Shown: one piece after another, positions 12,780-64,000 of the stretch | Layout: the number at the start of each line of letters is the position of its first letter | How positions within the stretch are numbered: position 1 is the stretch's first letter | DNA from: Macrostomum lignano | Lineage: Eukaryota | DNA: 64,000 nucleotides | Direction: 5' to 3' | Assembly: GCA_002269645.1 (NCBI GenBank) | Contig: NIVC01000199.1 | Span: 620,001-684,000, forward strand | Made by a program: the position numbers and the translations under genes | Notes under the pieces: model-generated | Database searches by the model: none | Told to the model about the DNA's origin: nothing | Seen by the model: only the letters and a program-made list of their open reading frames with translations

Positions 12780-15700
12780 TCAATTGGTTCCAGAGCGCAC
12801 CAGGTGTCTGGCCAGCAGCGGATACTCGTCTCGCGTCAGCAGCAGATCAATCTGGAACAGGTGGCTGACATCGTTGGCCAGGAAGTAGCCTAGAAATTTT
12901 CTCTTGCTGTCGCGGTCCGATTTAGGTATTTGAGACAGGCTCAGCGCCGCTGGAGGCTTGATCAGCACGTCGGCGAAAGTGTCAGCTTGGCGGGTATGAA
13001 CAAGGTGGTTTGGATGGCCAAAATCTCTGCTTTATCTTATTAAGTAATAATGAATCATAACTGATTACATACACCTGCCCCAATGGGCAAATGTGCAACC
13101 GACAGCTCAGCTGAAGGCTGCGTACCGCTGTTCAGTCCAAGGACTGAGGGAGGGGGGTTGCCACACACCCTCAATTATCCCAGCTAATGCTGGCAATTAT
13201 TTTACAGGTGAACTAAAGCAATGCAGAGTTAAGCGTCTTGCTCAAGGACACGAATTGTTTCGGGTTGGGTCGAGAATTGAACCCCCGACCTTTCAGTCGG
13301 GAAACCGACGCTCTATATAAACCACTAGGCTGCAACGCCTAATATATTTACATGTAATGACTATATGTCTACATGTACTATCACATTTACAAGCTCCTTA
13401 ACTCACCAAAGAGTGGCAGATCAGTGTCATTCTCGGAGCTATGGGAATGCACCAGCTTCAGGAATGTGATCAAATAGACGAACACGTTTGCATTGATCTC
13501 GGGAAGGCAGTTGTAAATCTGGAGGAAATTCATTGATATCCTAAACTGTGCAATGTGTACATTCATTAAATACATGCCTTTGTTAGCAATTTAGCAGATC
13601 AATGCGACATTCACTCGCAGCTAAAGAGGAGGCAAGGAGTCATGCCCATTCCATTCTACCGACCCACATCAATCAAACTTTGTGGGTTACTTAACTGATC
13701 CGAGTGTGATTGAATATACAAATCAGTTTTGGCTTTTACTAAGGGCGACCAAAAGTGAACATCGATCACGCACCTCAAGTGAGTTCTTGAAACTTTTCGA
13801 CGCGTCCATAATAGTGGAGTAAAGCTGTGACGGAAACAGACTGTCGGGCAGGCAGTCGAAGAACAGCACAATCGCTTCCAGTATTGAGTAGGCGCTCACG
13901 CTCGAGATGCGACTCTCGGCATTCCACGACTCGACATTGTCCAACAGCCAGCGAATCTCTTGCAGATCTCTATGATAGCCACCGCGTCTGAACAGGTCCG
14001 GCTTCTTTAAACAGCTCCTGCGCGCCGTTTCAACCAGTATTTTGAGCTCTTTGGGAATTAGGAAACGATGCATCGGGGATGTTTGAGCAGTTCTAGACGG
14101 GAGCGCGTAGAATCGGTACTTGGCGCTCAGAGCGTGGCTTGGCGAGAGGCGAAAGCTGTTGCCGCATCCAGCAGCGTCGTCCATGATGCCTCCAATGGCC
14201 GGCTGACGCTGGTCGGTGGCCTTCATCGGAGCATTGTTGACAGGATTTTGTGCCTGCCGCTGTTGCTGCTGCGGTACCTGCTGATTTTCCTGCTGCTGTT
14301 TGTCTTGCTGCTGCTGCTGACTTGATGGCTGAGCTTGCTGCTGAACTGATTGGCCTTGATGCTTGTTCGGCGGCTGTTGATGCACCTGCTGTTGCTGCTG
14401 CTGTTGCAGCAATTGTTGCAGGGTGTCGGCCTGAGCAAATCTGCCCACTGGCTGGGCCAGCTGCACCAGCTCGTTCAGCGGCATGCCGTAGCAACTACGT
14501 CGATAGGCAATTCGAGGCTTAACAGTGTAATCGCCGCCCGTCATCACGTGAATGACGAGATGCTGCGTCAAGCAGGACGGATCGCGCAATACCTGCACAT
14601 TGACTGTCTGCTTGAGCTTGATCAGCTGCACCCCGCCAGGAGGTATGATTCCATTTTGCGGCTGAATACGCATTCCGGGCGGTCCGTAGCGCATCGTGTC
14701 GTAGCAGGGGACGAAGCACCACTCGGCCGGCAGCATGCCGGGGTTTCGGAGCACAACAACGCCGTAGGCTTTCTCTAGGAAACTAACGGAACGATCAAAG
14801 TCAACCACTTGGTTGTCAATCACAACTCGAGGCATGTAGACGTCGCGAAGCATTACGGTTTCAAGGAGGACCTTCTCTGCTTCGGTGTCGAAGCAGATGC
14901 TGTTGCGGCCGCTGCGCTGTAATGCGTTTCGGGTGCACAGGTGTCAATTTGGTTGATATGCTAGTGACTACAGAGGGCTTATAAAGCAGCAAAATCTACT
15001 TTAGCAACGTTGTATCCAAAGGGTTGTACATGTACAAGTGATTAGAGCTTCAGACTCGCGACTGAAAGGTCCGGGGTTCGATTCTCGTCCCTCTCGGAAC
15101 AAGTTGTGTCCCTGAGCAAGACACCCATTTAAAATTGGTGCCAGTACTAGCTCGAACCCCCCCCCCAGTCCCTGGACTGAACAGCCGTACGCAACCTTCA
15201 TATGCGCCGCGCAATAGCTGCAGCTGGGCTGTCGAATGCACGTCTGCCCATTAGCATGTGCACAAACATGTGTTGCATTAGTTGGCATCAAATTTCCAAG
15301 ATATTATTAAGAGGGTAGTAAAGCTAAAATTCTCCTGTAACCATTAAACTGTACGTAAGTCACCAAGATCAAGCCCAGCTTTCTCAGCCAATCAACAACT
15401 CACCACTATGGTGAACGCGGAAGTAAGCGACAAGTACTTCTGGGTGCAATTGTGCCTCGCGTATCTGGTCTCAAGTTTCGGATAGGGGCTGTTATCAACA
15501 GAGTCAACGCGTACAAAAGCTTTAGCATTGCGTACAAATTTCATTGAATGATTCATAGCGTCCATGTTAGTGAGTTCGCGCGGCGTTTTCAGTTTCACTT
15601 CCATGAACCGTTTGTCAGACGGCATGTCGTTCCGATCGGTCATGAGGCCTCGCTGCATCGTGGACTGGATAGAATGAATTAATCAGGGTAAGTGCGGTGA

Positions 15701-18236
15701 AGATCGACTGCTATTTTTTATGGCTTTGAGATGTAGCACATGCACGTGTAAAAATCACGTTTGCAACGGTAAGCAAGTAAGCTTTTATCATTTAATCAGG
15801 CAGACAATCTGATTTTGAACTTCAATCTGACACCGAGAAGCACTCCATAATCACATTGAAAAGAACGACACATAAAAATTCATAAATATTTTGAAGGCCT
15901 ACGTTAAATAGCGAGAGATACTTTTCGCAAACAAACACAAACTTCGATAGTCTGCTAAAATCAGTTTGATTCAACATAGAAAAATCCCCTGAAAGCTTTT
16001 AACCCTTTTCTCTGACCTTCAATGATGTTTAGATGCAACTGATCTTTGCGGAAGAAATCGTGTTGAAATTATTGTCAGCTTAAAATACTAGTACCAGCAT
16101 TTGACGCCTCACTTCCTCTTACTTTTAGTGGACAAGGGAAACGTCATCAAACGCAAGTGCGTACACGACAAAACTACACTTCAATATACAACTATAGAGA
16201 TTAAAATTGCAGTTCAGTCCATGAAAGCCCATTACTTTTTTGTAGCCAAGTAACTTACAACTAGATCCTCCATTGTCTTAGCGTAGATGTTAGACCGATT
16301 AAAGTCCTTAGCAAAAGTCTCATTAAACGCGTCCAGCGGATCGGCAATTTTTGATTGTGGTACTCGAATCTGCGACTGCGAGCGACCTACAGAGCTGGTC
16401 GTGGCCACGTTGAAGCGACCGATGGAACTGTCGGCAAAGTCCTGATTGTCACTTGCAGCCTGAGTACCAGAGAAATCAGTGTCGTAGCTTCGCTGTCTCT
16501 GCAGCATGTAGGAGGAGTGCTCGTCCGAGAACTGGCTCCGCTGACGGACGCTGCCAACGATGCCCGTGGCCGCCCGCTCGCGTTCGACAATCTCTAGCAG
16601 GGTTGCCGTGACTGGGAACTCGCCGAATGCGAATATTATGCTGCAGGTGAATTGGCCAGTTAGTGAACTGACTCTGAATGCGAGAATGACTGACAAGGAG
16701 ACTGACAGGGAGACTGATTAACAGGGAGACTGACTGACAGCGAGCCTGATTGACAGGGAGACTGACTGACAGGGAGACTGACTGACAGGGAGACTGACTG
16801 ACAGGGAGACTGACAGGGAGACTGACTGACAGGGAGACTGACTGACAGCGAGCCTGATTGACAGGGAGACTGACTGACAGGGAGACTGACTGACAGGGAG
16901 ACTGACAGGGAGACTGACTGACAGGGAGACTGACAGGGAGACTGACTGACAGGGAGACTGACAAGGAGACTGACTGACAGGGAGACTGACAGGGAGACTG
17001 ACAGGGAGACTGACTGACAGGGAGACTGACAGGGAGACTGACTGACAGGGAGACTGACAGGGAGACTGACTGACAGGGAGACTGACAGGGAGACTGACTG
17101 ACAGGGAGACTGACTGACAGGGAGACTGACTGACAGGGAGACTGACTGACAGGGAGACTGACTGACAGGGAGACTGACTGACAGGGAGACTGACTGACAG
17201 GGAGACTGACTGACAGGGAGACTGACTGACAGGGAGACTGACTGACAGGGAGACTGACTGACAGGGAGACTGACTGACAGGGAGACTGACTGACAGGGAG
17301 ACTGACTGACAGGGAGACTGACTGACAGGGAGACTGACTGACAGGGAGACTGACTGACAGGGAGACTGACTGACAGGGAGACTGACAGGGAGACTGACTG
17401 ACAGGGAGACTGACTGACAGGGAGACTGACAGGGAGATTGACTGACAGGGAGACTGATTGAGTTTAGTAACTCACTGTTGATAGCTATTCTTCTTGCTAA
17501 ACAAGGTTTGGTTGTGCAACCCATTGCTAGACACCAGCTCCAAGTACTCGATATCATCAGACCACACGGCCGAGTCGGCACCCTCCATGATCATCAGGAA
17601 GGTGAGCACGAGTTTCTGAGTTGAGCAGCGCAGTGCAAGCATGTCGTGACTAAGGTAGCTCTGCCTACCACCCTTGATGTACACAAAAGCGTCCTTCTTC
17701 GTGATCAGAGTGAACAGCAGAATGGCGCTATTGCCGCAGACGAACTCGGCCAATTGACAATAAATTGTAGAAGACGACTCGCCATTGTTAATCTCGGCCA
17801 GAGCAACTTTCTTAATCTCGTCCAATTTAGCGCTGAGCCTGGAAGTTCGCACGCCTACGGCGATTAAATCGAACAGATCGTCCATAGAAAACTTCTCAGT
17901 GATGGGATCTTCTGGTTCCATTTGTTTGGCGGCGTCAGATGTCTGGTCGAGCTTTTGCACTACTCGCCTGACAGCCATGGTCTCTAGCGGCGATAGAATG
18001 TCTAACCTGCTGATGGAGTCGTCCTTGCACTTGCAGTAAGACAGCTTCACGTTGAGCTGCATCTGCAGTTCAATCTCTTGAAATCTGTTGGCCAGTCGTC
18101 GCTGAAAGATGGACATGAAGCGCGTGTCCAGTGGCGGGTGGGTGGACTCGAACGGGCTGGTGTTCAGCTGCAGCCGATCAAACAGCTCCCGGATGGGGTG
18201 GTTCATTGCGTACTGCTTTCTGGATTCGTCCGCCAT
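12780..18236 (-). CDS. OCRL: OCRL/INPP5B-like protein: degenerate inositol 5-phosphatase domain + ASH + RhoGAP-like domain, ~954 aa
   Basis: Exons 17476-18236, 16259-16640, 15404-15664, 13774-14916, 13407-13518, 12780-12985. Phases 2/0/0/0/1 all match; 2865 nt total. ASH-like: LRNPGMLPAEWCFVP...GIIPPGG...HLVIHV...YRRSCYGMPLNEL. RhoGAP-like: IPKELKILV...DLFRRGG...SILEAIVLFFDCLPDSL...NANVFVYLITFL...TFADVLIKPP...KFLGYFL. These parallel the OCRL C-terminus. Orthologue vs paralogue unresolved. Confidence 0.85.
13060..13335 (-). mobile_element. tRNA-headed CORE-type SINE in the last intron of the OCRL-like gene
   Basis: Minus strand: A-box-like GCCTAGTGG, B-box GGTTCAATTC, then GTGTCCTTGAGCAAGACGCTTAAC...CTGTAAAAT, resembling the MIR/CORE consensus. 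Confidence 0.7.
15030..15250 (+). mobile_element. Second copy of the same SINE family
   Basis: CGACTGAAAGGTC..GGGTTCGATTCTCG...GTGTCCCTGAGCAAGACAC. The 3' part (ggactgaacagc.gtacgcaacctt) matches the 13.1-kb copy in reverse. Confidence 0.7.
16690..17458. repeat. Intronic minisatellite, 16-bp unit (gagactgactgacagg) with 12-bp variants
   Basis: Fills intron 1 of the OCRL-like gene. Confidence 0.95.
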
Positions 18237-20449: not shown

Positions 20450-21003
20450 GTTGCCTGGGAGCTCCCAGTCCCAGAACCTCAGTTGCTGGGCCACTGCACC
20501 CCCAAATCCTCAGTTGCTGGGCCAGCCTCCCAGATACTCAGTTGCTAGGCCAACCTCCCAGATCCTCAGTTGCTAAGCCACTGCACCCACAGATCCTCAG
20601 TTGCTGGGCCAGCCTCCCAGATCCTCAGTTGCTGGGCCAGCCTCCCAGACCCTCAGTTGCTGGGTCAGCCTCCCAGATCCTCAGTTGCTGGGCCAGCCTC
20701 CTCGATCCTCAGTTGCTAAGCCACTGCATCCCCAGATCCTCAGTTGCTGGGCCAGCCTCCCAGATCCTCAGTTGCTAGGCCAGCCTCCCAGATCCTCAGT
20801 TGCTGGGCCAGCCTCCCAGATCCTCAGTTGCTAGGCCAGCCTCCCAGATCCTCAGTTGCTGGGTCAGCCTCCCAGATCCTCAGTTTCTGGGCCAGCCTCC
20901 CAGATCCTCAGCTGCTAGGCCAGCCTCCCAGATCCTCAGTTGCTGGGCCAGCCTCCCAGATCCTCAGTTGCTAGGCCAGCCTCCCAGATCCTCAGTTGCT
21001 AAG
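20450..21003. repeat. Minisatellite, 28-bp unit (cagatcctcagttgctgggccagcctcc), ~19 copies
   Basis: Period read directly (20761, 20789). Confidence 0.95.
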
Positions 21004-21275
21004 CCACAGTTATCCCTCATACTGTAGCTCATAGTTGCGCACTTAAACAAAAAATAAAAGCGTAAATAACGCTAAAAACAAACACCGTTAAACGTCATGA
21101 AGTTTTCTACATTAAAAATGCTTTAATGGCATTTAGTTTAAAAGGTTTTATCTATATTTCACTTTGTGTGCAGATGCACAATTTTTTTTAATCAACTCTT
21201 GAAAGAAGGGTTTGAAAATTTTATGATCTACGAGATTTTATGATCTCGTACAAAACACAGCGTTCAGAATTAGAA

Positions 21276-23391
21276 TTAGTCATCAATGAGCCCTACTAAA
21301 TGGTGAAGTACAGCGCAGAGCTGACTCTTTCGTCCCAGAAGCTCAGAAAGAAATAGCACTCCATCTTTGCGAGACTCCACATCGATAGCCAAATTGTAGA
21401 CAAACTTGCCAGATAAATAGTCCGACACGGGCGGCAGACTGACACTGTTGGGCTGGTGAGACTGGCACAGCAGACTGGCTGACAGCAGTGTGGCCTGCGG
21501 CGATAGTGTTAATTAGCTATTAGAATTCATATGTAGCAAAGGCCCAGGTATTCCGACCCCCTATCTTAGGTATTCTGACTCCCAGTTCAGGTATTCCGAG
21601 TCGTTTAACAGGCTCCCAGGTATTCAGACTCATCCCTAGCCTTAATATCCAGGTATTCAGACCCATCCATAGCCTTAATATCCAGGTATTCAGACTCATC
21701 CATAGCCTTAATATCCAGGTATTCAGAGCCATCCATACCCCCAATAAACAGGTATTCAAACCCATCCAGACCCCAATACCCAGGTATTCAGACTCATCCA
21801 TAGCCTTAATATCCAGGTATTCAGAGCCATCCATACCCCCAATAAACAGGTATTCAAACCCATCCAGACCCCAATACCCAGGTATTCAGACTCATCCATA
21901 GCCTTAATATCCAGGTATTCAGACCCGTCCATAGCCCCAATAACCAGGTATTCAAACCCATCCATAGCCCCAATACCCAGGTATTCAGGCCCATCCAGAC
22001 CCCCAATATCAAACAGGCAGTCAGTCGCAAACCTGAAAATGTGACAAGCAGTGCACCAGCTGCAGGTCAAAGCCGACCCGGTGGTTGATAGCAGGCTGCT
22101 CAGAGTATTTAGCGAGCACGGTGGCCCGCTGTCGCCTTAACAATTCAGCCTCTTCAGACGGCAGACAAGACTGGCACAGTTTGCACAGGCAGGTGGCTAG
22201 TAGAGACAGGCAAACTGAGCGACAGGTTCGCGATGGCACAGTTGAGTTATTGCCAACTAATAGTCGATGCGAGGCCAGGACAGAGTAAAGAACTGAAATT
22301 ATTCGATATCAAGTAATTTAATATGTTAAATGATACTAACTAACGAAATTTATTGAAGAAATTATTGATCAATTTATAATTCCAGAAGTCATAAAGGTGA
22401 AGGCATCCTTGGCCCAAATTAAGGATGCCATCTGCATAACACATGGTATATATGACACATGAAATGCATGACATGACATTCATGACACATGAAATTCTTG
22501 ACATGAAATGCATGACACATGATATGCACGAGACATGACATTCATGACACATGACAAATGACATTCACGACACATGAAATTCATGACATGTGACATTCAT
22601 GAAACATGACATTTTGACACATGACATTCCTGACACGACAATCATGACACGACATTTATGACACATGACATCATGACACATGACAATCATGACACATGGC
22701 ATTCATGGCACATGACATTCATGACATATAACATTCATGAAACATGACATTCATGACACATGACAATCATGACACATGACAATCATGACACATGACATTC
22801 ATGACACAGGATTCATGACACATGACATTTATGACACATGAAATTCATGACACATGAAATTTATGACACATGACATTCCTGACACGACATTCATGACACA
22901 TAACATCATGACACATGACAATCATGACACATAACATTCATGACACATGACATTCATGACACATGAAATGACAAAAACCTACGATTTTGCCAACAATAGC
23001 CCTTCGACCTAGAACGAAAGTCATAACCTCACCAATCTTCAGCCCTGCATGCCCGACCAGGTCGCCGAGAGGGTCTCTTGGGTAGCCCAGCCGAGCTGAC
23101 AGACACGAGGCCGCATCGCTGCAGCATCCGTCAGGCAGGTCCGGCATCAGCGGGAGCACAGATTTACCCAGACCGCCGCGCACTCTGCGATGCTCAACAA
23201 TCGTTGAGCAATGCTCAAGCCGGCCAAGTCGGCTCAGTAGCAAAGAGTAGGCAGCCTGACGCAGCGGCGCCGTGTCATCGAAGGTGCACGGGTTCGATGG
23301 ATCCTCGATGCCCACGGGCAGGTAGAGCTGGCCGTGCTGGGCCACGTCAAAGAATAGCGGCGACATGCGACCTGGGAGGGTTGGTTGGATG

Positions 23392-23423
<32 letters not shown>

Positions 23424-23634
23424 TTCAGTTGGTTAGTTAGTTAGTTAGTCAGTCAGTTAGTTAGTTAGTCAGTTGGTTAGTTAGTTAGTTAGTAAGTTGG
23501 TTAGTAAGTCAGTTAGTTAGTTAGTTAGTTAGTTATTCAGTTGGTTAGTTAGTTAGTTAGTCAGTCAGTTAGTTAGTTAGTTAGTTAGTTAGTCAGTTGG
23601 TTAGTTAGTTAGTTAGTAAGTTGGTTAGTAAGTC

Positions 23635-23677
<43 letters not shown>

Positions 23678-23899
23678 CAGTTAGTTAGTTAGTTAGTTAG
23701 TTAGTCAGTTGGTTACTTGGTTAGTTAGTTAGTCAGTCCATTAGTTAGTTAGTTAGTTAGTTAGTTAGTCAGTTAGTTAGTCAGTTGGTTAGTCAGTTAG
23801 TTAGTGAGTTAGTTAGTTAGTTAGTTAGTTAGTCAGTTGGTTAGTAAGTTAGTTAGTTAGTCAGTTGGTTAGTTAGTCAGTTAGTTAGTCAGTCAGTTG

Positions 23900-23936
<37 letters not shown>

Positions 23937-24233
23937 ATAGTTAGTTAGTTAGTTAGTCAGCCAGTCAGTATTTGCACGCCCGCACCTTCGAGCAGTCCAG
24001 ACTCCGTCAGCCATTGCGGAATACCCAGAGAGCTGTGGAAGCTCAGTTTGAGACCAGATTGAGACGCTGCAGCTGCTGCCGCGGCATTGGCGGGCGGTTC
24101 AACCAGAGCGAGAGCGGAATGCAGTTGGTAATGCGCCATGGACTCTCGCACAGAGGCCAGGAACCTGAGCAATATAGCAAACTTAAATTGTTAAAATTAT
24201 CTGCATCGAAGGCAGACAGACAGACAGACTCTA

Positions 24234-24296
<63 letters not shown>

Positions 24297-24429
24297 GGCA
24301 GACATACAGACACAGACAGACAGACAGACAGACAGGCAGACAGACACTAAGACAGACAGACAGACAGACAGACAGACACTAAGACAGACAGACAGACAGA
24401 CAGACACTAAGACAGACAGACATACAGAC

Positions 24430-24476
<47 letters not shown>

Positions 24477-24531
24477 GGCAGACAGACACTAAGACAGACA
24501 GACAGACAGACAGACAGACAGGCAGACAGAC

Positions 24532-24608
<77 letters not shown>

Positions 24609-24619
24609 GGCAGACAGAC

Positions 24620-24658
<39 letters not shown>

Positions 24659-27600
24659 CAGACAGGCAGACAGACAGACAGACAGACACAGACAGACAGC
24701 CAGCTAAGTCTGGTCATCACCTGTGCGCCCAACGCTTGTCCTCAGTCTGCAGGTCGTCACAGTCGCCGAGCAGCAGGCGCCGCAGCGCAGCCAGGCAGTT
24801 GTCGGGGCTCGCAAAGTTCCGGTGCGTCCAGACCAGCACGCCAGCGATGAGTCGGCGACTCTTGCTCTTCAGCTGCCTGCCGCCGCCTCCGCCGCTGCCG
24901 CCGCTACCCCCACCAGCGGATTTCGGCAGCTGAACTCGGGAGAGAATGCAGCGCCCCACGGCACCGCGGGACAAATAGTCGTTGCCGATCAGGGTGGCGC
25001 ACAGGGGCAGCAGGCTGGGGTTTACCTGACGGATTGTGATTGAGTTGTTGGATTCAGACGGTTCAAATTGTCATGGCATTTTGGGCGATTCTCATGGTGG
25101 TGTCGGGGCGATTCTCATGGGTGGTGTAGGGGCGATTCTCATGGTGGTGTCGGGGCGATTCTCATGGGTGGTGTAGGGGCGATTCTCATGGGTTGTGAAG
25201 GGGCAATTTTCATGGGTTGTGAAGGGGCGATTCTCATGGTGGTGAAGGGGCGATTCTCATGGTGGTGTAGGGGCGATTCTCATGGTGGAGTAGGGGCGAT
25301 TCTCATGGGTAGTGAAGGGCGATTCTCATGGGTAGTGAAGGGCGATTCTCATGGGTAGTGTAGGGGCGATTCTCATGGATGGTGAAGGGGCGATTCTCAT
25401 GGTGGTGTAGGGGCGATTCTCATGGGTAGTGAAGGGCGATTCTCATGGGTAGTGAAGGGCGATTCTCATGGGTAGTGAAGGGGAGATTCTCATGGGTAGT
25501 GAAGGGGCGATTCTCATGGGTTGTGAAGGGGCGATTCTCATGGGTTGTGAAGGGGCAATTTTCATGGGTTGTGAAGGGGCGATTCTCATGGGTTGTGAAG
25601 GGGCAATTTTCATGGGTTGTGAAGGGGCGATTCTCATGGTGGTGAAGGGGCGATTCTCATGGTGGTGTAGGGGCGATTCTCATGGTGGTGTAGGGGCGAT
25701 TCTCATGGGTAGTGAAGGGCGATTCTCATGGGTAGTGAAGGACGATTCTCATGGGTAGTGAAGGACGATTCTCATGGGTAGTGAAGGGCGATTCTCATGG
25801 GTAGTGAAGGGCGATTCTCATGGGTAGTGTAGGGGCGATTCTCATGGATGGTGAAGGGGCGATTCTCATGGTGGTGTAGGGGCGATTCTCATGGGTAGTG
25901 AAGGGCGATTCTCATGGGTAGTGAAGGGCGATTCTCATGGGTAGTGAAGGGGAGATTCTCATGGGTAGTGAAGGGGCGATTCTCATGGGTTGTGAAGGGG
26001 CGATTCTCATGGGTTGTGAAGGGGCAATTTTCATGGGTTGTGAAGGGGCGATTCTCATGGGTTGTGAAGGGGCAATTTTCATGGGTTGTGAAGGGGCGAT
26101 TCTCATGGTGGTGAAGGGGCGATTCTCATGGTGGTGTAGGGGCGATTCTCATGGTGGTGTAGGGGCGATTCTCATGGGTAGTGAAGGGCGATTCTCATGG
26201 GTAGTGAAGGACGATTCTCATGGGTAGTGAAGGACGATTCTCATGGGTAGTGAAGGGCGATTCTCATGGGTAGTGAAGGGCGATTCTCATGGGTAGTGAA
26301 GGGCGATTGTCATGGGTAGTGTAGGGGCGATTCTCATGGATGGTGAAGGGGCGATTCTCATGGTGGTGTAGGGGCGATTCTCATGGGTAGTGAAGGGCGA
26401 TTCTCATGGGTAGTGAAGGGCGATTCTCATGGGTAGTGTAGGGGCGATTCTCATGGGTAGTGAAGGGGCGATTCTCATGGATGCTGAAGGGGCGATTCTC
26501 ATGGATGGTGAAGGGGCGATTCTCATGGATGCTGAAGGGGCGATTCTTATGGTGGTGTAGGGGAGATTCTCATGGTGGTGTAGGGGCGATTCTCATGGAT
26601 GGTGAAGGGGAGATTCTCATGGGTAGTGAAGGGGCGATTCTCTTGGGTTGTGAAGGGGCGATTCTCATGGGTTGTGAAGGGGCGATTCTTATGGGTTGTG
26701 AAGGGGCGATTCTCATGGTGGTGAAGGGGCGATTCTCATGGTGGTGTAGGGGCGATTCTCATGGGTAGTGAAGGGCGATTCTCATGGGTAGTGAAGGACG
26801 ATTCTCATGGGTAGTGAAGGACGATTCTCATGGGTAGTGAAGGGCGATTCTCATGGGTAGTGAAGGGCGATTCTCATGGGTAGTGTAGGGGCGATTCTCA
26901 TGGATGGTGAAGGGGCGATTCTCATGGTGGTGTAGGGGCGATTCCCATGGGTAGTGAAGGGTGATTCTCATGGGTAGTGAAGGGCGATTCTCATGGGTAG
27001 TGTAGGGGCGATTCTCATGGGTAGTGAAGGGGCGATTCTCATGGTGGTGCAGGGGCGATTCTCATGGGTTGTGAAGGGGCGATTCTCATGGGTAGTGAAG
27101 GGGCGATTCTCATGGGTTGTGAAGGGGCGATTATCATGGGTTGTGAAGGGGAGATTCTCACGGTGGTGCAGGGGCGATTATCATGGGTTGTGAAGGGGAG
27201 ATTCTCACGGGTAGTGAAGTGGCGATTCTCATGACAATGATTAAATGCTTAAAAAACTAGTCAGTCAGTGAAACAACAAACCACCTACCTTCCTCCGCAA
27301 AGCCGGCAGGTAGAAGTCTCTAACCCGGTAGATCTGACAGTCCAGAAACGGTGCGGGCTTCGCCTCATTTTCGTCCAATAAAGCTTTGGTGAGATGCAGA
27401 GTCTTAGTGAGCACCACCCCGCCCGGCAGGTCGTAGATAAGAAAGTCGCTGTCGTTGGTGAGCACGGGGCAGCCCAGCTGAGCAGCCAGAGAGGCCAGGT
27501 GATTATCAGCGTCGCCGAATGCGCTCACAATTAAATTAAACTCGAACTCGTCAACCACCGTGCTAGGGAAATAAAATGTGATTAATGGAATGGGACAAAT

Positions 27601-29865
27601 AGATATGAGAAATCCCAACCAGAATGGGATCAATCTATATTAGAAATCCCAACCAGAATGGGATCAATCTACATTAGAAATCCTAACCAGATTGGGATCA
27701 ATCTACAATAGAAATCCCAACCAGAATGGGATCAATCTACATTAGAAATCCCAACCAGAATGGGATCAATCTACAATAGAAATCCCAACCAGAATGGGAT
27801 CAATCTACAATAGAAATCCCAACCAGAATGGGATCAATCTACAATAGAAATCCCAACCAGAATGGGATCAATCTACATTAGAAATCCCAACCAGGATGGG
27901 ATCAATCTACAATAGAAATCCCAACCAGAATGGGATCAATCTATATTAGAAATCCCAACCAGAATGGGATCAATCTACATTAGAAATCCCAACCAGGATG
28001 GGATCAATCTACAATAGAAATCCCAACCAGAATGGGATCAATCTACAATAGAAATACCAACCAGAATGGGATCAATCTACAATAGAAATACCAACCAGAA
28101 TGGGATCAATCTATATTAGAAATCCCAACCAGAATGGGATCAATCTATATTAGAAATACCAACCAGAATGGGATCAATCTACAATAGAAATACCAACCAG
28201 AATGGGATCAATCTATATTAGAAATCCCAACCAGAATGGGATCAATCTATATTAGAAATCCCAACCAGAATGGGATCAATCTACATTAGAAATCCCAACC
28301 AGAATGGGATCAATCTACATTAGAAATACCAACCAGAATGGGATCAATCTATATTAGAAATCCCAACCAGAATGGGATCAATCTACATTAGAAATCCCAA
28401 CCAGAATGGGATCAATCTATATTAGAAATCCCAACCAGAATGGGATCAATCTACATTAGAAATACCAACCAGAATGGGATCAATCTACAATAGAAATACC
28501 AACCAGAATGGGATCAATCTATATTAGAAATCCCAACCAGAATGGGATCAATCTACATTAGAAATCCCAACCAGAATGGGATCAATCTACAATAGAAATA
28601 CCAACCAGAATGGGATCAATCTACAATAGAAATACCAACCAGAATGGGATCAATCTACATTAGAAATCCCAACCAGAATGGGATCAATCTACATTAGAAA
28701 TCCCAACCAGAATGGGATCAATCTACAATAGAAATACCAACCAGAATGGGATCAATCTATATTAGAAATCCCAACCAGAATGGGATCAATCTACATTAGA
28801 AATCCCTATTTAAATGGTGAGCGCATCACTCACCTGATGAACACTTCCATAGCCATGACTGGCAGCAGCCGATTGCTATTACCCCCAGCATTTTTAGCTT
28901 TGGCCCCGCCGCCCCCTCGGTCTAGCTGAACGCATTTCTTTACGCGCTTTTCAATTCGAGCTCGCTGTTCGCGCAGCTTCGGTCCAGTCCAGTCCTTGGC
29001 CCCGTCTAGTACGAATAGCGGCGTGATGCCGCACTCCACCATGCTGGAGAATGCTCTCCGCAGCTCTCTGTAGCGGTGATAGCCAGTTTAAGTGGCTATA
29101 CATAGTTAAACATCTAAATAATGTGTGTATTCTTACAATTACTTAGCATCTTAGCATACTTACCTATAGACTATCAAATAACTTCAGCTAGATCCTCATA
29201 TCTAACTAGCCAATCCCCTTACCTATATTACCTCAGATCCTCATATCCAACTAGCTAATCCCCTTACCTGGATTACCTTAGATCCTCATATCCAACTAGC
29301 TAATCCCCTTACCTGGATTACCTTAGATCCTCATATCCAACTAGCTAATCCCCTTACCTGGATTACCTTAGATCCTCATATCCAACTAGATAATCCCCTT
29401 ACCTGGATTACCTTAGATCCTCATATCCAACTAGATAATCCCCTTACCTGGATTACCTTAGATCCTCATATCTAACTAGCTAATCCCTACCTAAACTACC
29501 TCAAATCCTCATATCTAACCAGCTAATCCCTACCTAAATTACCTCAAATCCTCATATCTAACCAGCTAATCCCTACCTGGATTACCTCAAATCCGCATAT
29601 CTAACCAGCTAATCCCTACCTGGTTTACCTCAAATCCTCATATCTAACCAGCTTATATCTACCTATATATGTCATTGTCAGGGCAGATTTCTTACCTGAC
29701 ATACTGACCATATTCTCCAGCAAAAAGATATTCAATATTGTGCAGGTGATACAAATGATGTGCTAAATTGGAGGCATCAATCACTAGATAGCAGTTGCGC
29801 AGCCGATGCCTATGCAAATTATTGCTATGCTGTAGCATATATGTTTGAAGACCTTGTACACCCAT
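21276..29865 (-). CDS. ASTE1: Asteroid homolog (XPG/FEN1-like PIN-fold nuclease family), ~647 aa
   Basis: Exons 29696-29865 (MGVQGLQTY...LVIDASN...GEY), 28834-29067 ([11 protein letters not shown]...EVFI), 27289-27562 (GDADN...[15 protein letters not shown]), 24721-25025 ([13 protein letters not shown]), 23986-24164, 23033-23371 (LYLPVGIED...[10 protein letters not shown]), 22033-22256 ([12 protein letters not shown]), 21276-21494 ([10 protein letters not shown]). Phases consistent; 1944 nt total. Confidence 0.92.
21590..22010. repeat. Intronic minisatellite, ~33-bp unit (ccaggtattcagactcatccatagccttaatat), ASTE1 intron 7
   Basis: Period 21618 to 21651, with alternating unit variants. Confidence 0.9.
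22440..22975. repeat. Intronic minisatellite, ~16-bp unit (catgacacatgacatt), ASTE1 intron 6
   Basis: Direct reading. Confidence 0.9.
23390..23960. repeat. (TTAG)n microsatellite, ASTE1 intron 5
   Basis: Direct reading; occasional TCAG/TTGG variants. Confidence 0.97.
24210..24700. repeat. (CAGA)n microsatellite, ASTE1 intron 4
   Basis: Direct reading. Confidence 0.97.
25075..27235. repeat. Intronic minisatellite, 23-24-bp unit (gggcgattctcatgggtagtgaa), with a 469-bp higher-order duplication, ASTE1 intron 3
   Basis: Identical spurious ORFs at 25443/25912, 25445/25914 and 25468/25937 give a 469-bp offset. Confidence 0.95.
27598..28806. repeat. Intronic minisatellite, 34-bp unit (agaaatcccaaccagaatgggatcaatctacatt), ~35 copies, ASTE1 intron 2
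   Basis: Period 27608 to 27642. Each unit contains an ATCCCA/TGGGAT hairpin. Confidence 0.97.
29170..29665. repeat. Intronic minisatellite, ~45-bp unit (gatcctcatatccaactagctaatccccttacctggattacctta), ASTE1 intron 1
   Basis: Period 29281 to 29326. Confidence 0.92.
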
Positions 29866-56700: not shown

Positions 56701-59700
56701 ATCTTTGATCACGTCCACAGCATCTTCTGAGCTCAATGTTGCTGGTTCCTTTACTGTCACTATTTACTGGTGCATCTGAATGAATCGCCTCTGTCCAGTT
56801 GCTAATGGTATTCAGGTAAAAACCTTTAGCGGTAGAGACTTGCATCATGCACGAGCAGTCAGCGCTTCCGGGTAGCGGTGGAAGCAGTGGCGAGGAGAAC
56901 ATTGCAGTGGCACGGCGCCAACGATTTCGTAAACCAAGATGGTAGAGTCGGCTGCAATGTAAGCAAAGTTTGCATGTCTCAAAGTCAACTTTACAATTTA
57001 ATTTAGTTACAATACTATATTACTCTAGTCTCTAGTGCTCAGCACTGTGCTATCGGCAATGCAGCCAGAATCAGAAAAGGACACTAAGCTCTATAAACGG
57101 TAGGTGTACGTACCCACGCGATTCGAGCTGAATCACCTTTACTTTAACTGCATGATTTTCGTCCAGTGGTCGAATAGTCCATTCACAGTTGATCCTCTTG
57201 AGCCGGGTTAAACGATCGGAAATCTTACTTTGATATTTGTTTATTCTCTGTACTGATGAGCAGTTCGTGTGCACTGGCTCTGAAATTAAGTAGATACCAA
57301 GAGGTTGAACAATAATCTATAGAATGGTTAGTCACGAATAAATTGATTGGCGCTTCTATTCCTTGTTGCCTAATTGCTTTTTGGGTTGATTAGACGTGTA
57401 TAAAGGTGATTTCTTAGAGCTACTGCATAAAAAACTCTAGACTTTACCCGGTAGCGTCGTGCAGAATATAGTAATCTTTCTGTTAGGCAAGGAAATTCTG
57501 TTGCGAAGTCGAATAGTTACCGAACCCGGGTATGCAACAAAATCGAAACCGTTAGTGCTATTTTTGCAGAGGCAATGCTTTTCAATGCCACCTCTCAGTC
57601 CACTGCCGGATGCGGACAGTATCCTTGTGGATGATAAACAACACGGTCCTGAAAAAGGAAACATTAGTAACGCTTTTGTAGGAGTGTGGAATTTCAGCCT
57701 TTTGTGTTTGAACTAATTGATAACGTATCTGCATTAGAGATTTTCTTCATGAAAGCCATATTTATAGCTTTTTTCAGAAGCTTTTCGTTTAATTAGGAAG
57801 TTTTTTCAACAATAAAGAATGACAGAAGCAAACGATCGAAAAAAATCCGAAACTATAGCTAGAAAAGTATAGCAAGGGCTAGAACACGGCCGACATGGCT
57901 ATCAAAGGGCCGCGGATCTACATGTAGGATCGGCGATTCGGGTTTTGTACTAGTTAAACTGTTAATGTGTAAGTTATAATGTTTAACTGAGAATATTCAC
58001 GGTTAAACTATTAATAAGATAAGGATCGCGTCCTAGTTACACTGAGTGTTTGAACTAAAATAACTTCCAAAGCTATACTTCTATACGAGCTATTGTTTAT
58101 TCCTACTATTTCTAAGGATATTTTGTAGCCAAAATTATTACGAGTAATTACCTTAAATCGTACTAAACTGCTAAAACGTCGAATACCCCATTTGGATTAC
58201 TTATACTAGCTACTGAAAAAATCTTGGCGCGCTACTAACCGCAGTAGATAATTCGGGTATAACTCTCTTAAACTTCCACGACGCTTAGTAAATTATACAA
58301 TTATAAATTCCTACTTAACGAGAAATGCCTTCTGACATACCTTGATTGGCTGCTAACAGGGTGATTTTAACGAGGAATACTCATCACATTTTCAAAGCGG
58401 GCATTTGAGAGTATTTATCCCCGTGATTTAGTAAGTCTTAGTCGTGACGTAACAGAAGTCAAGATTTCATCTGGGATTTAAGAGCTTTGGGTTGTCAAGC
58501 TATTTTTAGAAGAAACACTCCTAGCTAGTACTAATAAAGGTATTTTAATTATCCTGTCAGCTGTTTGCTTCTGTATGTAATAGATTATTTTTTCCAAGCG
58601 GTACATATGTACGAGTATACAAGCGTATCTATTGTCTTCGTCACGCAATGAAAATGGACTAGTAAAATGCTCCAAAGTGAAACAGCCGATTGAGTGCAAT
58701 AATTGATAGTAATGTTCAAAAGTAGTAAATTTGAAACGTACCGTGTGAACCGCTACTGACAAAGATCTTCGTATCATCAAGCATATCCCTGAAAATTGCA
58801 TTTATTCGCATTATCTTTCCCCCTTGGACTGTCAGCCGCCACATGCAGTTAAGACTTGGTTGGTTTAACTCGAGTGTAAGCGCTTTCAGTTGAAGGGTAT
58901 CTACGAACTCGGGACAGTTGAATGCTGCAAAGACGATTGGTATTAGAAATAGTTGTAGGCGCATTTGCAATTATTTTTGATCGGTATTAACAATACTGGT
59001 TGGTTCCCCAGAGCTTACACTGCATGTCTTCCAGTCCTGGCAGCTGGTAGGCATCATGCAGTGGTACAAAATACCATCTCAAGTGGAAGCCGCGCCTGGA
59101 CACGGAGCGATCTGTGACAAACTTCACAACCACATCGCTCTTGCTAGTAAAGTACGACAGGTGTAAACTCTTGCAAGCTACCTTGGAGGCCCATCTGTCA
59201 GTTATGACATTCTTGTACACAAATGTGACATTGTCAAATCTGCACTCCGAATTTTGAACGCTGCTGGTCTCTAGATCCAGGGACACAATCCTAAAGTGGA
59301 TCAGAGTGAAGTTGTCCGGCACCCGAATAGTCCAGTTGCAATTCATGTTCGGCTGGTAGCTTGAGTTGACAATGGTCAGGTATTCCACATGGGACATTAG
59401 CTGGCCACCGCTAAATGGTCCAGCTGAGTTTAGAGTAAGATTTGACAGCGGCATTGGCACCATGCAGAGTGATTGAGTTGTATTGGCTGGAAAATATACA
59501 TGGGTGTTTAATGAAGCTTGTAAATTGTGACAATTGAAAAAAAATTAACACCAGCGAACCAGTGGTATTTTTCTATCTCTATTTTACAAAGCACTGTTTT
59601 TTACCACTCATCAATCATCGATGACCCCAAATAATTTTGTGTAGTTTTGTGGGCTAATATAATAACGTGTTATCATTCATAATTTTTAGGTACCGGTTGA

Positions 59701-62700
59701 TTAAATACCAGTGCTTCTTAAACTTGAAATTATCAGCACTGGTAACTGATAGGCTACCCGTGGTATTTTACCACTGGTTATTATCCAGTGCTTCGTAATA
59801 TTGGCCCCAGGTAGTAAGAAGACTTAAATTTATGTTGTGTATAAATTCTGCGGAGTCACAGATGTGAGAAATTAGACTAAGCTCAATTGTAGCATTCCGT
59901 ACTTTAGGAAAATTACTGATCTTCGTATATCTGCATTGATTTGTTTATAGATTATTTCTCGTCCGAAGATTATTTTCTTTTGAGTCTTTAAACTACCTCG
60001 CTTTTATGCCTTGTGACGAAAAATAGAAGGTAGCTTTAAATTAAAAGTCCTCCTAGTGTGTACCAATTGTTCGTTCTAGTTACGTATCTTAAAAAAAACT
60101 TTAGAATGATTTCGATTTGTTATACATCGTGTAAAGTAAAGTATTCAGGATTTATTCTTACAAAACATTCCCCAGGACCGTCTGAACAGGTCGGCCTGCG
60201 TCTCGTTTAGGTGCATCCATTCGATGGCGAATCCCCTCGAACTGACTGACGAGTCCGTCCGGAACGTCACTTCGATGCTGGAACTGGCCAGGAATGTCCG
60301 GTCCCGCGTCATGGCGCACAAGGTTCTTCGTACTGGCTGGCCTGTTAAGGCATCCGTGAAGTGCAAGGTCAAGTTGTCATAGTTGCATAACTGCGTTCCG
60401 CCAGTGCCTGCCAAATACTCGAGGTGAACCAGCCTGACCCATAGCATAATGTATTGGCTCTTTCTTGTTAGATTCCATTGGCAGTTTTGATTGTTTTTAT
60501 ATCGATCTGACCCCGCGTATTCCATGGAAAAGCCTTCGTGCGACACCAGCCTTTCACCCGGAGCAGAGACGCCAGCGATGGTTATTGTTCGCATCTCCTC
60601 CGGCTTGGTGCATCGCGAGTAGCCTGCGGATGGTACAGTGGATTATCTTTATTGAAATGTATTTAATCCAATATCTTGAAACTTTGAGTCCTTCAAAATT
60701 GACCTTACTCAATACTCCAGAGTTGGCTTGTTGATTTTTAACTGAATCTTGAACCGTCAATATCTAAGTATTGTAGAATACCTTGGGAGCTCAAATGAAG
60801 GTTTCAAACCCGAAATATCAAAACTCCGAAAGTGCTAGCAATGTCAAACGCTAGATCGTATTTTTATTTTATTGAAATATGATCTTTTGGATCTGTGATA
60901 TTTCAGGTTCATGATGGAAAGCGCTTTTCGGAGTTGCTATTTTTCGGGTTCACCCAGGACTGTAGGGTCACTACACATAAACACACACCCTCAGTTACAC
61001 CAGTTGATTTTGTACCCATTTTACAGCTGGGTGAACTAAAGCAATGCAGAGTATAAGTGTCTTGCTCAGAGACACAAATTGTTCCGAGTGGGTTGAGAAG
61101 CGAACACCGGAGTCGTGAAAGGGTTATTACTAAGCTCAAGACCCTTGTACCGGGTATAGAATACGATATCATGAATCAAGGAAGGTCGAGAATGATCGAG
61201 AATAATGAAGTTCTATGCGCGAACTGCAAATAATTCTTTTGATTCAGCAGGGCCTGGGTGGGAGCCAGACACCGAAATTGTATATTTTGGGCAGGTATGA
61301 TAGCAAGCCAAGCAAGTCTTTTTGTTGAGTTAAATGCATTTAAATGTAAGAAATAACAAAAACATGCTGCTGAGACCCCAAAGCTTTAAGAAAGGTCTTT
61401 ATTGACCACCCTGTATCGAGAGGCTTACTCTATTTGGGATAAATACGAGTAGGTAGCATGGGATTATATATCAACTTAAGATTTTAAATATAATCCGATG
61501 GTTCAGTAAATTTTACGTGTTTCCCTTTATTCTATCTGAGGGGATTGTGACCTTATAGTGTGATCTTAATGTGATCCTAATCTTAATATGTGACATACGG
61601 TCATACTTGTGTGACTAAGCTATGGGAATAGAACTCATAAGAGATGGTTGGAGGCATTACTAACAGCTTGTTTGCCGCAAACTATGGCAATAATCTTTAA
61701 TTAAGAACTCACGAGTTGTGTTTTTTATCTCTAGCGCAAGCGACTCATCGACGTACGCCCATTGCAGGTGGAAACCTCGGTAGTTCACACTCGAATCCGT
61801 CTTGAAGGTGATGTTAATTCCAGACCTGGAAAGTAATACTTTGCTTTCCACTGAGCCGCAAAAATTCTGGCTGCTTGAATAGTTTGTCTTTAAATCTACA
61901 AAGTCGAAAATCAAGGCATCGTAATCGCAGGTTGGCGACGACTCCAGAATCAAATTCGTAATGCGGATCAGAGTGATTAGGCCGTCCCGGCCGGCGATTA
62001 TCCACTGACAGTTCAAATTGTGCTCGTGCTCAGAGGCGCTATTATTGAAATAGTCGGCGTGGGAAGTCAGGTCCCATCCGGAGAGGCCCGAAATTCCAAA
62101 TTGGTTGGCCACACGAGTTGGCCTGGTGCAGTTGTTTGGAGTCACCAAGATCGCAGTTGTTGTTTGAGCAGTCGGCCGAGTCGTAGTTCGGACGCTAGCA
62201 CTCGTTGGTATCTGATGAGCAGATCCTGTCTGCAACATCTGCGTTGATTGTCGAACCGAGTTAGATGGCACATCATTCCTCCCGTCAATGAATTCATGAT
62301 CGGCTGAATTTAAGGAGAAGAAAATTTTATAGTAGCTCGTAAGTCATCAAAGCATCTAAGGTTAAACATTTTGAGGCGCTCACGGGCAAGAGCAATTTAT
62401 AAAGGATTGTGCCAAAGCAAAATAATTAGCTAGTCAAGCGTGAGACAACGTCAAAATAAACAAAATACTCAATATTTAGATGTATTGTTCGTTTCCTTTA
62501 ATTTTAGAAACATAAAAGCAATTGAAAGCAATCAAGTTTATGTTGTTAAGTACTATGCGCAAAGGCTTTGACGCTTTTTCAGAGTCTAAGTTTGTTGGAT
62601 TGCTATGAGTATGAATGCTAAAATCTTTTATAAATCGCTAAAATTGTACAGTTGAAGTCTCAAGTTCGAACCGACTCAACTCACCAGAGACAGCTGGACT

Positions 62701-63499: not shown

Positions 63500-64000
63500 A
63501 CCTGGCACCCGCTCTGTATCTGGCACCCGCTCTGTATCTGGCATTCGCTCTGTATCTGGCACCCGCTCTGTATCTGGCACACCCTCTGTATCTGGCATTC
63601 GCTCTGTATCTGGCACCCGCTCTATATCTGGCACTCGCTCTGTATCTGGCATTCGCTCTGTATCTGGCATTCGCTCTGTATCTGGCACCCGCTCTGTATC
63701 TGGCACTCGCTCTGTATCTGGCACCCGCTCTGTATCTGGCACTCGCTCTGTATCTGGCATTCGCTCTGTATCTGGCACCCGCTCTGTATCTGGCACTCGC
63801 TCTGTATCTGGCACCCCCTCTGTATCTGGCACCCCCTCTGTATCTGGCACCCGCTCTGTATCTGGCACTCGCTCTGTATCTGGCACTCGCTCTGTATCTA
63901 GCACCCGCTCTGTATCTGGCACTCGCTCTGTATCTAGCACCCCCTCTGTATCTGGCACCCCCTCTGTATCTGGCACCCCCTCTGTATCTGGCACTCGCTC
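63500..64000. repeat. Minisatellite, 18-bp unit (cgctctgtatctggcacc), running off the window edge
   Basis: Direct reading; >=27 copies. Confidence 0.95.

Follow-up and report, generated by a model that had tools for sequence, protein, structure and literature searches.

An OCRL/INPP5B-type gene of Macrostomum lignano with an ASH-RhoGAP half and no recognisable 5-phosphatase domain

What becomes of the catalytic region of an OCRL/INPP5B-type protein when the ASH and RhoGAP domains behind it are kept and the phosphatase motifs are gone? This question is raised by a gene on the minus strand of a 64,000-nucleotide stretch of Macrostomum lignano DNA (GCA_002269645.1, contig NIVC01000199.1, positions 620,001 to 684,000; hereafter "the window"), which runs from 18236 to 12780 in the coordinates of the window. 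By its C-terminal domains and its gene structure it is a member of the OCRL/INPP5B family, and it fails to show what the family requires for catalysis. Our preferred reading, held with a confidence little better than even, is that it is a single intact gene of this family in which the ancestral phosphatase exons are still translated but have diverged past recognition by sequence, with the loss of catalysis. The evidence for the origin of these exons comes chiefly from the positions and phases of introns and from the similarity scores in the alignment registers that the introns fix.

Gene structure and the ASH-RhoGAP half

Rebuilt from the raw sequence, the gene comprises six exons and a frame of 2865 nt that encodes 954 amino acids with no internal stop, so that the uninterrupted six-exon open reading frame (ORF) described in the initial annotation was recovered independently and at the same length. 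The start codon (ATG, 18236-18234) lies in a good Kozak context (GCC ATG G), the donors read GTGAGT in three cases and GTAAGT and GTGCGT in the others, and all five acceptors end in AG. The interval 15404-18236, to which the proposed pseudophosphatase had been assigned, corresponds exactly to exons 1-3 and to residues 1-468. The peptide "FTIVV" cited for its end runs past the splice donor; the spliced protein reads ...SAFTIV followed by RSGRN. The parts of the gene are as follows.

Exon 1, 17476..18236, minus strand: residues 1-253 and two bases of codon 254, from the ORF and splice model
Intron 1, 16641..17475, minus strand: phase 2, in codon H254; GTGAGT...CTAAC(21 nt)...CAG
Exon 2, 16259..16640, minus strand: residues 254-381, opening with IIFAFGEFPVT
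Intron 2, 15665..16258, minus strand: phase 0, between V381 and S382
Exon 3, 15404..15664, minus strand: residues 382-468 (87 residues), the last element being a strand
Intron 3, 14917..15403, minus strand: phase 0, between V468 and R469; holds an element resembling a short interspersed element (SINE)
Exon 4, 13774..14916, minus strand: residues 469-849, comprising the linker helix, the ASH domain, a Gln-rich linker and the first two thirds of the RhoGAP domain
Exon 5, 13407..13518, minus strand: residues 850-886 and one base, after the acceptor TTTCCTCCAG
Exon 6, 12780..12985, minus strand: residues 887-954, with the stop codon at 12780-12782; the preceding intron is of phase 1, in codon A887

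The C-terminal half had been described as a recognisable ASH-RhoGAP module, and the scores bear this out. Pfam identifies an OCRL-type ASH domain (PF21310) at residues 501-600 (14521-14820, minus strand; 32.6 bits against a cutoff of 27, E 9.2e-8) and, directly after it in the order of the module, a RhoGAP domain (PF00620; 61.6 bits, E 1e-16). The best relative in the PDB is the human OCRL ASH-RhoGAP fragment 3qis (E 8.8e-22), with which the linker helix and both domains are colinear; the ASH domain also aligns to OCRL 3qbt, and the structure closest to the RhoGAP stretch is the RhoGAP-like domain of OCRL (E ~4e-13). The linker between the two domains, which is Gln-rich (CAG/CAA) and comprises ~118 residues (14086-14439, minus strand), is far longer than that of OCRL.

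Two residues by which OCRL binds its partners are replaced, both in columns that HMMER aligns with high confidence. T599 (14524..14526, minus strand) takes the place of Phe668, the Rab8-binding residue of OCRL, whose substitution (F668V) abolishes the interaction with RAB8A (PMC3392109), and K760 (14041..14043, minus strand) takes that of Trp739, the docking residue for the F&H motif, whose substitution (W739A) abolishes the binding of F&H peptides (PMC6743453). The arginine-finger position of the RhoGAP domain is occupied by R778 (13987..13989, minus strand), in DLFRRGG, and the same column of the HMMER alignments holds Gln757 in OCRL (EDLFQTPG) and Arg in ARHGAP5 (EGLYRVSG). To judge from these residues, the domain may be closer to an active GTPase-activating protein (GAP) than is the RhoGAP-like domain of OCRL. 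When the alignment is compared by eye with the motifs of p50RhoGAP, the other motif positions, the Asn of M-x-x-x-N-L-A-x-V-F and the Lys/Arg of A-x-x-L-K-x-F-x-R-x-LPEP, presumably read Leu, Leu and Asp here, as in OCRL.

The introns also carry repeats. Intron 1 contains, at 16700-17461, a 16-bp unit (GACTGACAGGGAGACT) repeated in tandem ~50 times; read on the minus strand, this array leaves two frames fully open and the third nearly so. The result is a set of spurious ORFs, 267-331 codons long and among the longest of the window, as well as many cryptic CAG acceptor-like sites. A short element is present in three copies that are 81-90% identical, at 15000-15320 (intron 3), at 13112-13315 (intron 5, in the opposite orientation) and at 61057-61111. 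It carries a tRNA-like B-box (GGTTCGATTCTCG) and is probably a tRNA-derived SINE; Rfam and ARAGORN searches over the window, these elements included, returned nothing.

Intron positions and the N-terminal half

For the comparison of introns, human OCRL being the sole gene compared, the human exon boundaries were taken from a splice-variant survey (NM_000276.4; PMC12142645) and transferred to the protein in a numbering that agrees with all the residues the survey names. All three C-terminal introns are ancestral OCRL introns. Intron 3 corresponds to human intron 15 (between c.1602 and c.1603, phase 0; between G534 and V535): HMMER pairs Y495, the residue 27 positions past the intron, with OCRL F561, and F561 in turn follows G534 by 27 residues. 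The junction of exons 4 and 5, KNSLE/IYNCLP, aligns without gaps to RICRQ/VISQLP, which is the site of human intron 22 (between c.2469 and c.2470, phase 0), when the acceptor at 13518 is used. Intron 5 interrupts codon A887 in phase 1, and the OCRL residue aligned with A887 is A861, where human intron 23 is located (between c.2581 and c.2582, phase 1). A second in-frame acceptor at 13545, 27 nt upstream of 13518, would add FRISMNFLQ and give a protein of 963 residues; only 13518 gives the position of human intron 22 and the gapless alignment, and the pair may reflect alternative splicing.

By their phases (2 and 0), their order and the lengths of the exons, introns 1 and 2 match human introns 12 and 13. 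The proposed equivalent of intron 1 is human intron 12 (between c.1244 and c.1245, phase 2, codon E415), and that of intron 2 is human intron 13 (between Q452 and L453), which must be of phase 0 because skipping of exon 14 yields p.Leu453Trpfs, an outcome that is possible only at a phase-0 junction. In this matching human intron 14 is counted as lost, and exon 3 has 87 residues against the 82 of human OCRL 453-534 (exons 14 and 15). All five introns stand at human OCRL positions and phases, namely those of introns 12, 13, 15, 22 and 23.

As anchors, the introns fix an alignment register without any optimisation, and the similarity score in that register can be compared with the scores in all other registers. 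At intron 1, GLHNQTLFSKKNSYQ[H]IIFAFGEFPVTATLL faces VVPNQTLPQLNIMKH[E]VVIWLGDLNYRLGMP, and the surrounding 15 residues on either side give p 0.0036 against OCRL and 0.031 against INPP5B. In this register GEFPVT stands opposite GDLNYR, with D422 replaced by E261, N424 by P263 and R426 by T265; when the N-terminal half is scanned with a five-member position-specific scoring matrix (PSSM) of the GDLNYR strand in the family, the GEFPVT position ranks second of 465. The last 30 residues before intron 3 give p 0.009 against OCRL and against INPP5B alike, and the last 15 give p 0.003 against INPP5B; in this register QKY stands opposite S522-D523-H524, so that Q456 faces S522, the catalytic Asp becomes K457 and the His becomes Y458. 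A tetrapeptide identical to human OCRL NQTL lies at -12 to -9 from the phase-2 intron in both proteins; this identity counts only weakly because the loop is not conserved in INPP5B. The segments concerned, together with an alternative remnant that is discussed below, are as follows.

NQTL, 17502..17513, minus strand: residues 242-245, the same as human OCRL NQTL
GEFPVT, 16607..16624, minus strand: residues 260-265, equivalent of GDLNYR in the register set by intron 1
QKY, 15434..15442, minus strand: residues 456-458, facing S522-D523-H524 in the register set by intron 3
WSDDIEY, 17544..17564, minus strand: residues 225-231, alternative remnant of the GDLNYR strand (W-x-GDLNY), at the top position of the PSSM

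Three terms were combined by Fisher's method: ~0.04 for the coincidence of introns, with any human intron permitted, 0.011 for anchor 1, corrected for three phase-2 candidates, and 0.009 for anchor 3. For the N-terminal half they amount to an estimated ~4e-4. On the strength of the intron positions and the scores in the fixed registers, it is probable, with good confidence, that exons 1-3 descend from the exons of a 5-phosphatase catalytic domain. Exon 1 begins with ~110 helix-rich residues and continues with a strand-rich stretch at residues 140-250, and the latter would match the first two thirds of the 5-phosphatase domain. In exon 2, the GDLNYR-equivalent strand is followed by an insertion of ~90 residues rich in Ser, Arg, Gln and Asp, which OCRL lacks; the corresponding human exon 13 encodes 38 residues.

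Whatever their origin, exons 1-3 are devoid of the residues on which catalysis by the family depends. A search by regular expressions found no motif of the WNVN, GFQE, NSHL, GDxNYR, PAWCDR or SDH types in residues 1-468, in agreement with the claim that the catalytic motifs had been erased, and no recognisable 5-phosphatase (IPPc/EEP) domain lies upstream of the ASH domain. Exons carrying GDLNYR or PAWCDR that are skipped in the present model had been named as an observation that would overturn the pseudophosphatase reading. When the OCRL and INPP5B catalytic domains (query sequences checked against PDB 4cmn and 3n9v) were compared with both strands of the window by tblastn, nothing appeared below E 2.8; hidden or skipped catalytic exons are therefore absent from the introns, from the 45 kb on the upstream side and from the 12 kb on the downstream side. 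A tblastn search of the window for a second copy of the gene likewise found none. The invariant residues (Glu of GFQE, His of NSHL, Asn and Arg of GDLNYR, Asp of PAWCDR, and Asp and His of SDH) are absent whether the GDLNYR strand is placed at GEFPVT or at WSDDIEY, and the loss of the invariant Asn and Arg of GDLNYR in particular is common to these two registers. Since GDLNYR has become GEFPVT and SDH has become QKY in the intron-fixed registers, the protein almost certainly cannot hydrolyse a 5-phosphate, as far as its sequence allows prediction; the D422 position is the one whose substitution in human OCRL (D422A) gives a phosphatase-dead mutant (PMC3392109).

That residues 1-468 are clearly coding is indicated by several properties of the exons. 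The guanine-cytosine (GC) content by codon position is 0.51/0.38/0.65 in residues 1-468 and 0.60/0.37/0.66 in the C-terminal half, and the introns have a GC content of 0.37-0.55. A codon model trained on exons 4-6 only favours the annotated frame for exons 1, 2 and 3 individually as well as for all windows of 40 codons, and the coding signal extends to the ~90-residue insertion and to the Gln-rich linker. The base composition predicts ~21 stops over 468 codons, and not one is observed (P 5e-10).

Alternative origins of the N-terminal half

Several results weigh against a descent of exons 1-3 from phosphatase exons, and the first of them is that every comparison left free to find its own register was non-significant, at the level of sequence, profile and profile-profile alike. 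The best BLASTP match between residues 1-478 and the OCRL catalytic domain has E 1.1, Smith-Waterman and semi-global alignments against OCRL and INPP5B remain below z 2 relative to shuffles, hidden Markov models (HMMs) of three and five members with filters off give no significant match, and hhalign returns a probability of 0.2%. Pfam has no match for residues 1-478 even at E<=10, and a PDB sequence search has none for the N-terminal half. An optimal gapped alignment with anchored ends reproduces the pairings of DLIAVGVRT with DIYCIGFQE and of AILLFTLITKKDAFVYI with MMLLIFARKDQCRYI, and its score is equalled by ~10% of shuffled sequences. The anchor at intron 2 shows no significant local similarity (p 0.13). 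Moreover, the best PSSM match of the GDLNYR strand in the N-terminal half is not GEFPVT but ADSAVWSDDIEYLE (residues 220-233), the register of WSDDIEY, which hmmsearch also picks and whose score is reached in 103 of 5000 shuffles (~2%). In spite of its higher local score, WSDDIEY was set second because both N-terminal introns would then be without a human counterpart in phase.

One free match deserves mention for its position. The BLASTP match with E 1.1 pairs residues 373-386 (YAKTMEDLVSTMQR; window ~15650-16283) with YRKVFEDSVRIMDR of OCRL, in the linker helix after the catalytic domain, and it is treated as due to chance because this position breaks colinearity.

These results bear on two elements of the initial annotation. 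Its claim that the fold landmarks, that is, spacing and hydrophobic strands, are recognisably kept finds no support, as none of the tests above is significant and the structure model is uninformative. Its alignment by eye fares better in part: several of its pairings are recovered in the end-anchored alignment, and in the intron-fixed registers that of HIIFAFGEFPVT with EVVIWLGDLNYR, like one further pairing, falls in the top 0.4-1% of all registers, but as a whole it is no better than what ~10% of shuffles attain.

The same negative results are what would be expected if the N-terminal 468 residues were an unrelated or de novo replacement, in which case the gene would encode an "X-ASH-RhoGAP" fusion and not a pseudophosphatase. 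Also in line with a replacement, an exhaustive phmmer search with exon 1 against 1.84e9 representative proteins found no homologue, and structure prediction by AlphaFold2 for exon 1 alone, from the single sequence, gave a predicted local distance difference test (pLDDT) of 40, with unrelated folds as the best Foldseek matches in the PDB (E 0.29). This low-confidence model is mostly helical in residues 1-110, and its strands in residues 140-205 fit the earlier strand assignment, an agreement to which no weight is given. Metagenome scans with exon 1 and with the ASH domain, as well as exact protein look-ups with the ORFs of the exons and both full-length models, produced no match, and word-indexed protein searches with either terminus, and with the C-terminal query stripped of its polyglutamine, were empty; the last are uninformative on eukaryotic relatives because the C-terminal query missed even OCRL, for which the PDB gives E 1e-21. 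On the other hand, a replacement would not be expected to recreate the phases that introns 12 and 13 have in the human gene, or an exon with 87 residues where the human segment has 82, nor to give fixed-register scores in the top 1% at both of the strands that flank introns. It is an unlikely explanation of the locus, albeit the best placed among the alternatives.

Next in likelihood, and rather improbable, is the view that two genes have been joined in the model: an orphan gene of exons 1-3 that ends at a TGA at 15392-15394 (...FTIVVSC*), and a gene for ASH and RhoGAP only that begins at an ATG at 14853 (MLRDVYMPRV...). Exon 3 does meet a stop 10 nt past the proposed donor, the ATG opens an ORF of 376 residues (13723-14853), and the SINE-like insertion lies between the two halves. 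However, the frame remains open for 30 codons upstream of this ATG, the acceptor stands exactly at the position of human OCRL intron 15 and in the same phase, with a phase-matched GTGAGT donor, codon usage is identical on either side, and the end of exon 3 resembles the last catalytic strand in the register of intron 3.

The view that a duplicated OCRL copy is decaying into a pseudogene, with its function gone, is more improbable again. The loss of the catalytic residues together with the Rab-binding Phe and the F&H-binding Trp, the large low-complexity insertions in the coding sequence, the repeats in introns 1, 3 and 5 and the failure to find an orthologue would be in keeping with decay. By contrast, a frame of 954 codons free of stops and frameshifts, five canonical splice-site pairs, the good Kozak context, and a three-base periodicity with a third-position GC content of 0.65 that persists throughout despite the divergence are not, and neutral drift of such depth predicts ~21 stops in the N-terminal half. 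Finally, an N-terminal domain that is still an active phosphoinositide phosphatase by means of non-canonical residues is barely credible, for although the ORF is intact and D228 would align with D422 in the alternative register, the invariant residues of the family are missing in either register.

Related proteins, surroundings and implications

Beyond the gene, a neighbouring multi-CUB gene is indicated on the minus strand at 58987-62271 by three ORF-sized exons with one CUB domain apiece (E 7e-13, 5e-8 and 2e-10 in Pfam). An ORF at 22938-23366 on the minus strand matches XPG_I_2 (E 1.8e-5, just above cutoff) and may be one exon of an Asteroid-like gene that lies upstream of the OCRL-like one. 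Minisatellites and microsatellites are unusually abundant in the window (25083-27233, 27608-28806, 23392-24703, 20469-22966, 63502-64000 and others); the repeat units include a 23-bp unit in 92 copies, a 34-bp unit in 35, (GTTA)141, (CAGA)127 and an 18-bp unit in 28 copies (an ORF of PDTERV repeats), and several of these arrays make long spurious ORFs.

Human OCRL (OCRL1) and INPP5B, together with the single homologues of invertebrates and protists such as Dd5P4 of Dictyostelium, share the order of ASH followed by RhoGAP with the M. lignano protein. The latter differs in having no recognisable 5-phosphatase domain or invariant residues, and no evidence of an N-terminal PH domain was found. It also differs from OCRL in its Thr for Phe668, Lys for Trp739 and Arg for Gln757, and in the two long additions, the ~118-residue Gln-rich linker and the ~90-residue insertion after the GDLNYR-equivalent strand. 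Vertebrates possess both OCRL and INPP5B, and the non-vertebrates that have been examined possess a single homologue with a RhoGAP-like domain (PMC4278560). If the genome also contains a canonical OCRL, a second, dead paralogue would thus be unusual.

Other proteins have abandoned phosphatase chemistry in comparable ways. The salivary nitrophorin of Cimex lectularius (PDB 1ntf, 4l1z) is also a member of the 5-phosphatase fold that gave up this chemistry; it is a single secreted haem-binding domain that is still recognised from OCRL (E 4e-19 to 7e-19), whereas the OCRL-like protein is far more diverged and keeps its ASH and RhoGAP domains. MTMR5, 9, 10, 11, 12 and 13 are likewise paralogues of phosphoinositide phosphatases that lack catalytic residues and serve as scaffolds or regulators, but they have the unrelated protein tyrosine phosphatase (PTP) fold, are clearly recognisable by sequence and heterodimerise with active paralogues. 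In searches of full texts, no OCRL-type pseudophosphatase was found to have been described; what was found concerns the myotubularin pseudophosphatases, engineered dead mutants and general work on OCRL and 5-phosphatases. Among the engineered forms, phosphatase-dead OCRL (D422A, D499A) and Dd5P4 D319G also combine a dead enzyme with intact ASH and RhoGAP domains, and the Dd5P4 mutant behaves dominantly (PMC6743453). These point mutants keep the docking sites for Rab and F&H proteins, whereas the M. lignano protein has lost both marker residues, which makes a dominant-negative mode less likely.

The distribution of conservation along the protein is inverted. In this family conservation is normally strongest in the catalytic domain, and from human OCRL the domain of synaptojanin of Schizosaccharomyces pombe is found at E 4e-56 and even the non-catalytic nitrophorin of Cimex at E 4e-19. 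Here the ASH-RhoGAP half can be recognised, whereas the catalytic region alone cannot, although it is still an open and periodic coding sequence that is spliced in the model. Such a pattern fits a paralogue that was released from catalytic constraint and yet kept as protein. Under the reading of a single intact gene with diverged phosphatase exons, these exons would have been freed from the constraint of catalysis, kept as protein and allowed to diverge, and the product may, as a less confident step, be a non-enzymatic adaptor. Its Ig-like ASH domain and its RhoGAP domain with an arginine at the finger position would engage small GTPases, of the Rho family more plausibly than of the Rab family, and the relic domain, the ~90-residue insertion rich in Ser, Arg and Gln and the ~118-residue Gln-rich linker might together form a disordered interaction surface.

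It had been suggested that a dead paralogue could act as a competitive regulator of OCRL. This is weakened by the replacement of the Rab-binding Phe668 by T599 and of the F&H-binding Trp739 by K760; because both residues are replaced, the protein probably has partners of its own rather than titrating those of OCRL, so far as such residues are a guide. It is also tempting to speculate, although we consider it doubtful, that the gene encodes a pseudoenzyme of the OCRL family maintained by selection, in which the dead EEP-fold domain has become a binding module, a change that took place independently in the nitrophorin of Cimex, and the RhoGAP domain, in contrast to its human OCRL counterpart, acts as a GAP with a working arginine finger. 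If true, the gene would have switched from a lipid phosphatase to a regulator or scaffold of the Rho family with its own partners.

As a point of method, Pfam, HMMER, HH-suite and AlphaFold run on the single sequence all fail to see the N-terminal domain, and its origin can still be traced by the positions and phases of introns. For the family, OCRL and INPP5B have been studied almost wholly as 5-phosphatases of phosphatidylinositol 4,5-bisphosphate (PI(4,5)P2), and a catalysis-independent role of the ASH-RhoGAP module is an open question in research on Lowe syndrome as well as Dent-2 disease. A natural paralogue that keeps the scaffold without catalysis would be an evolutionary experiment on exactly this role.

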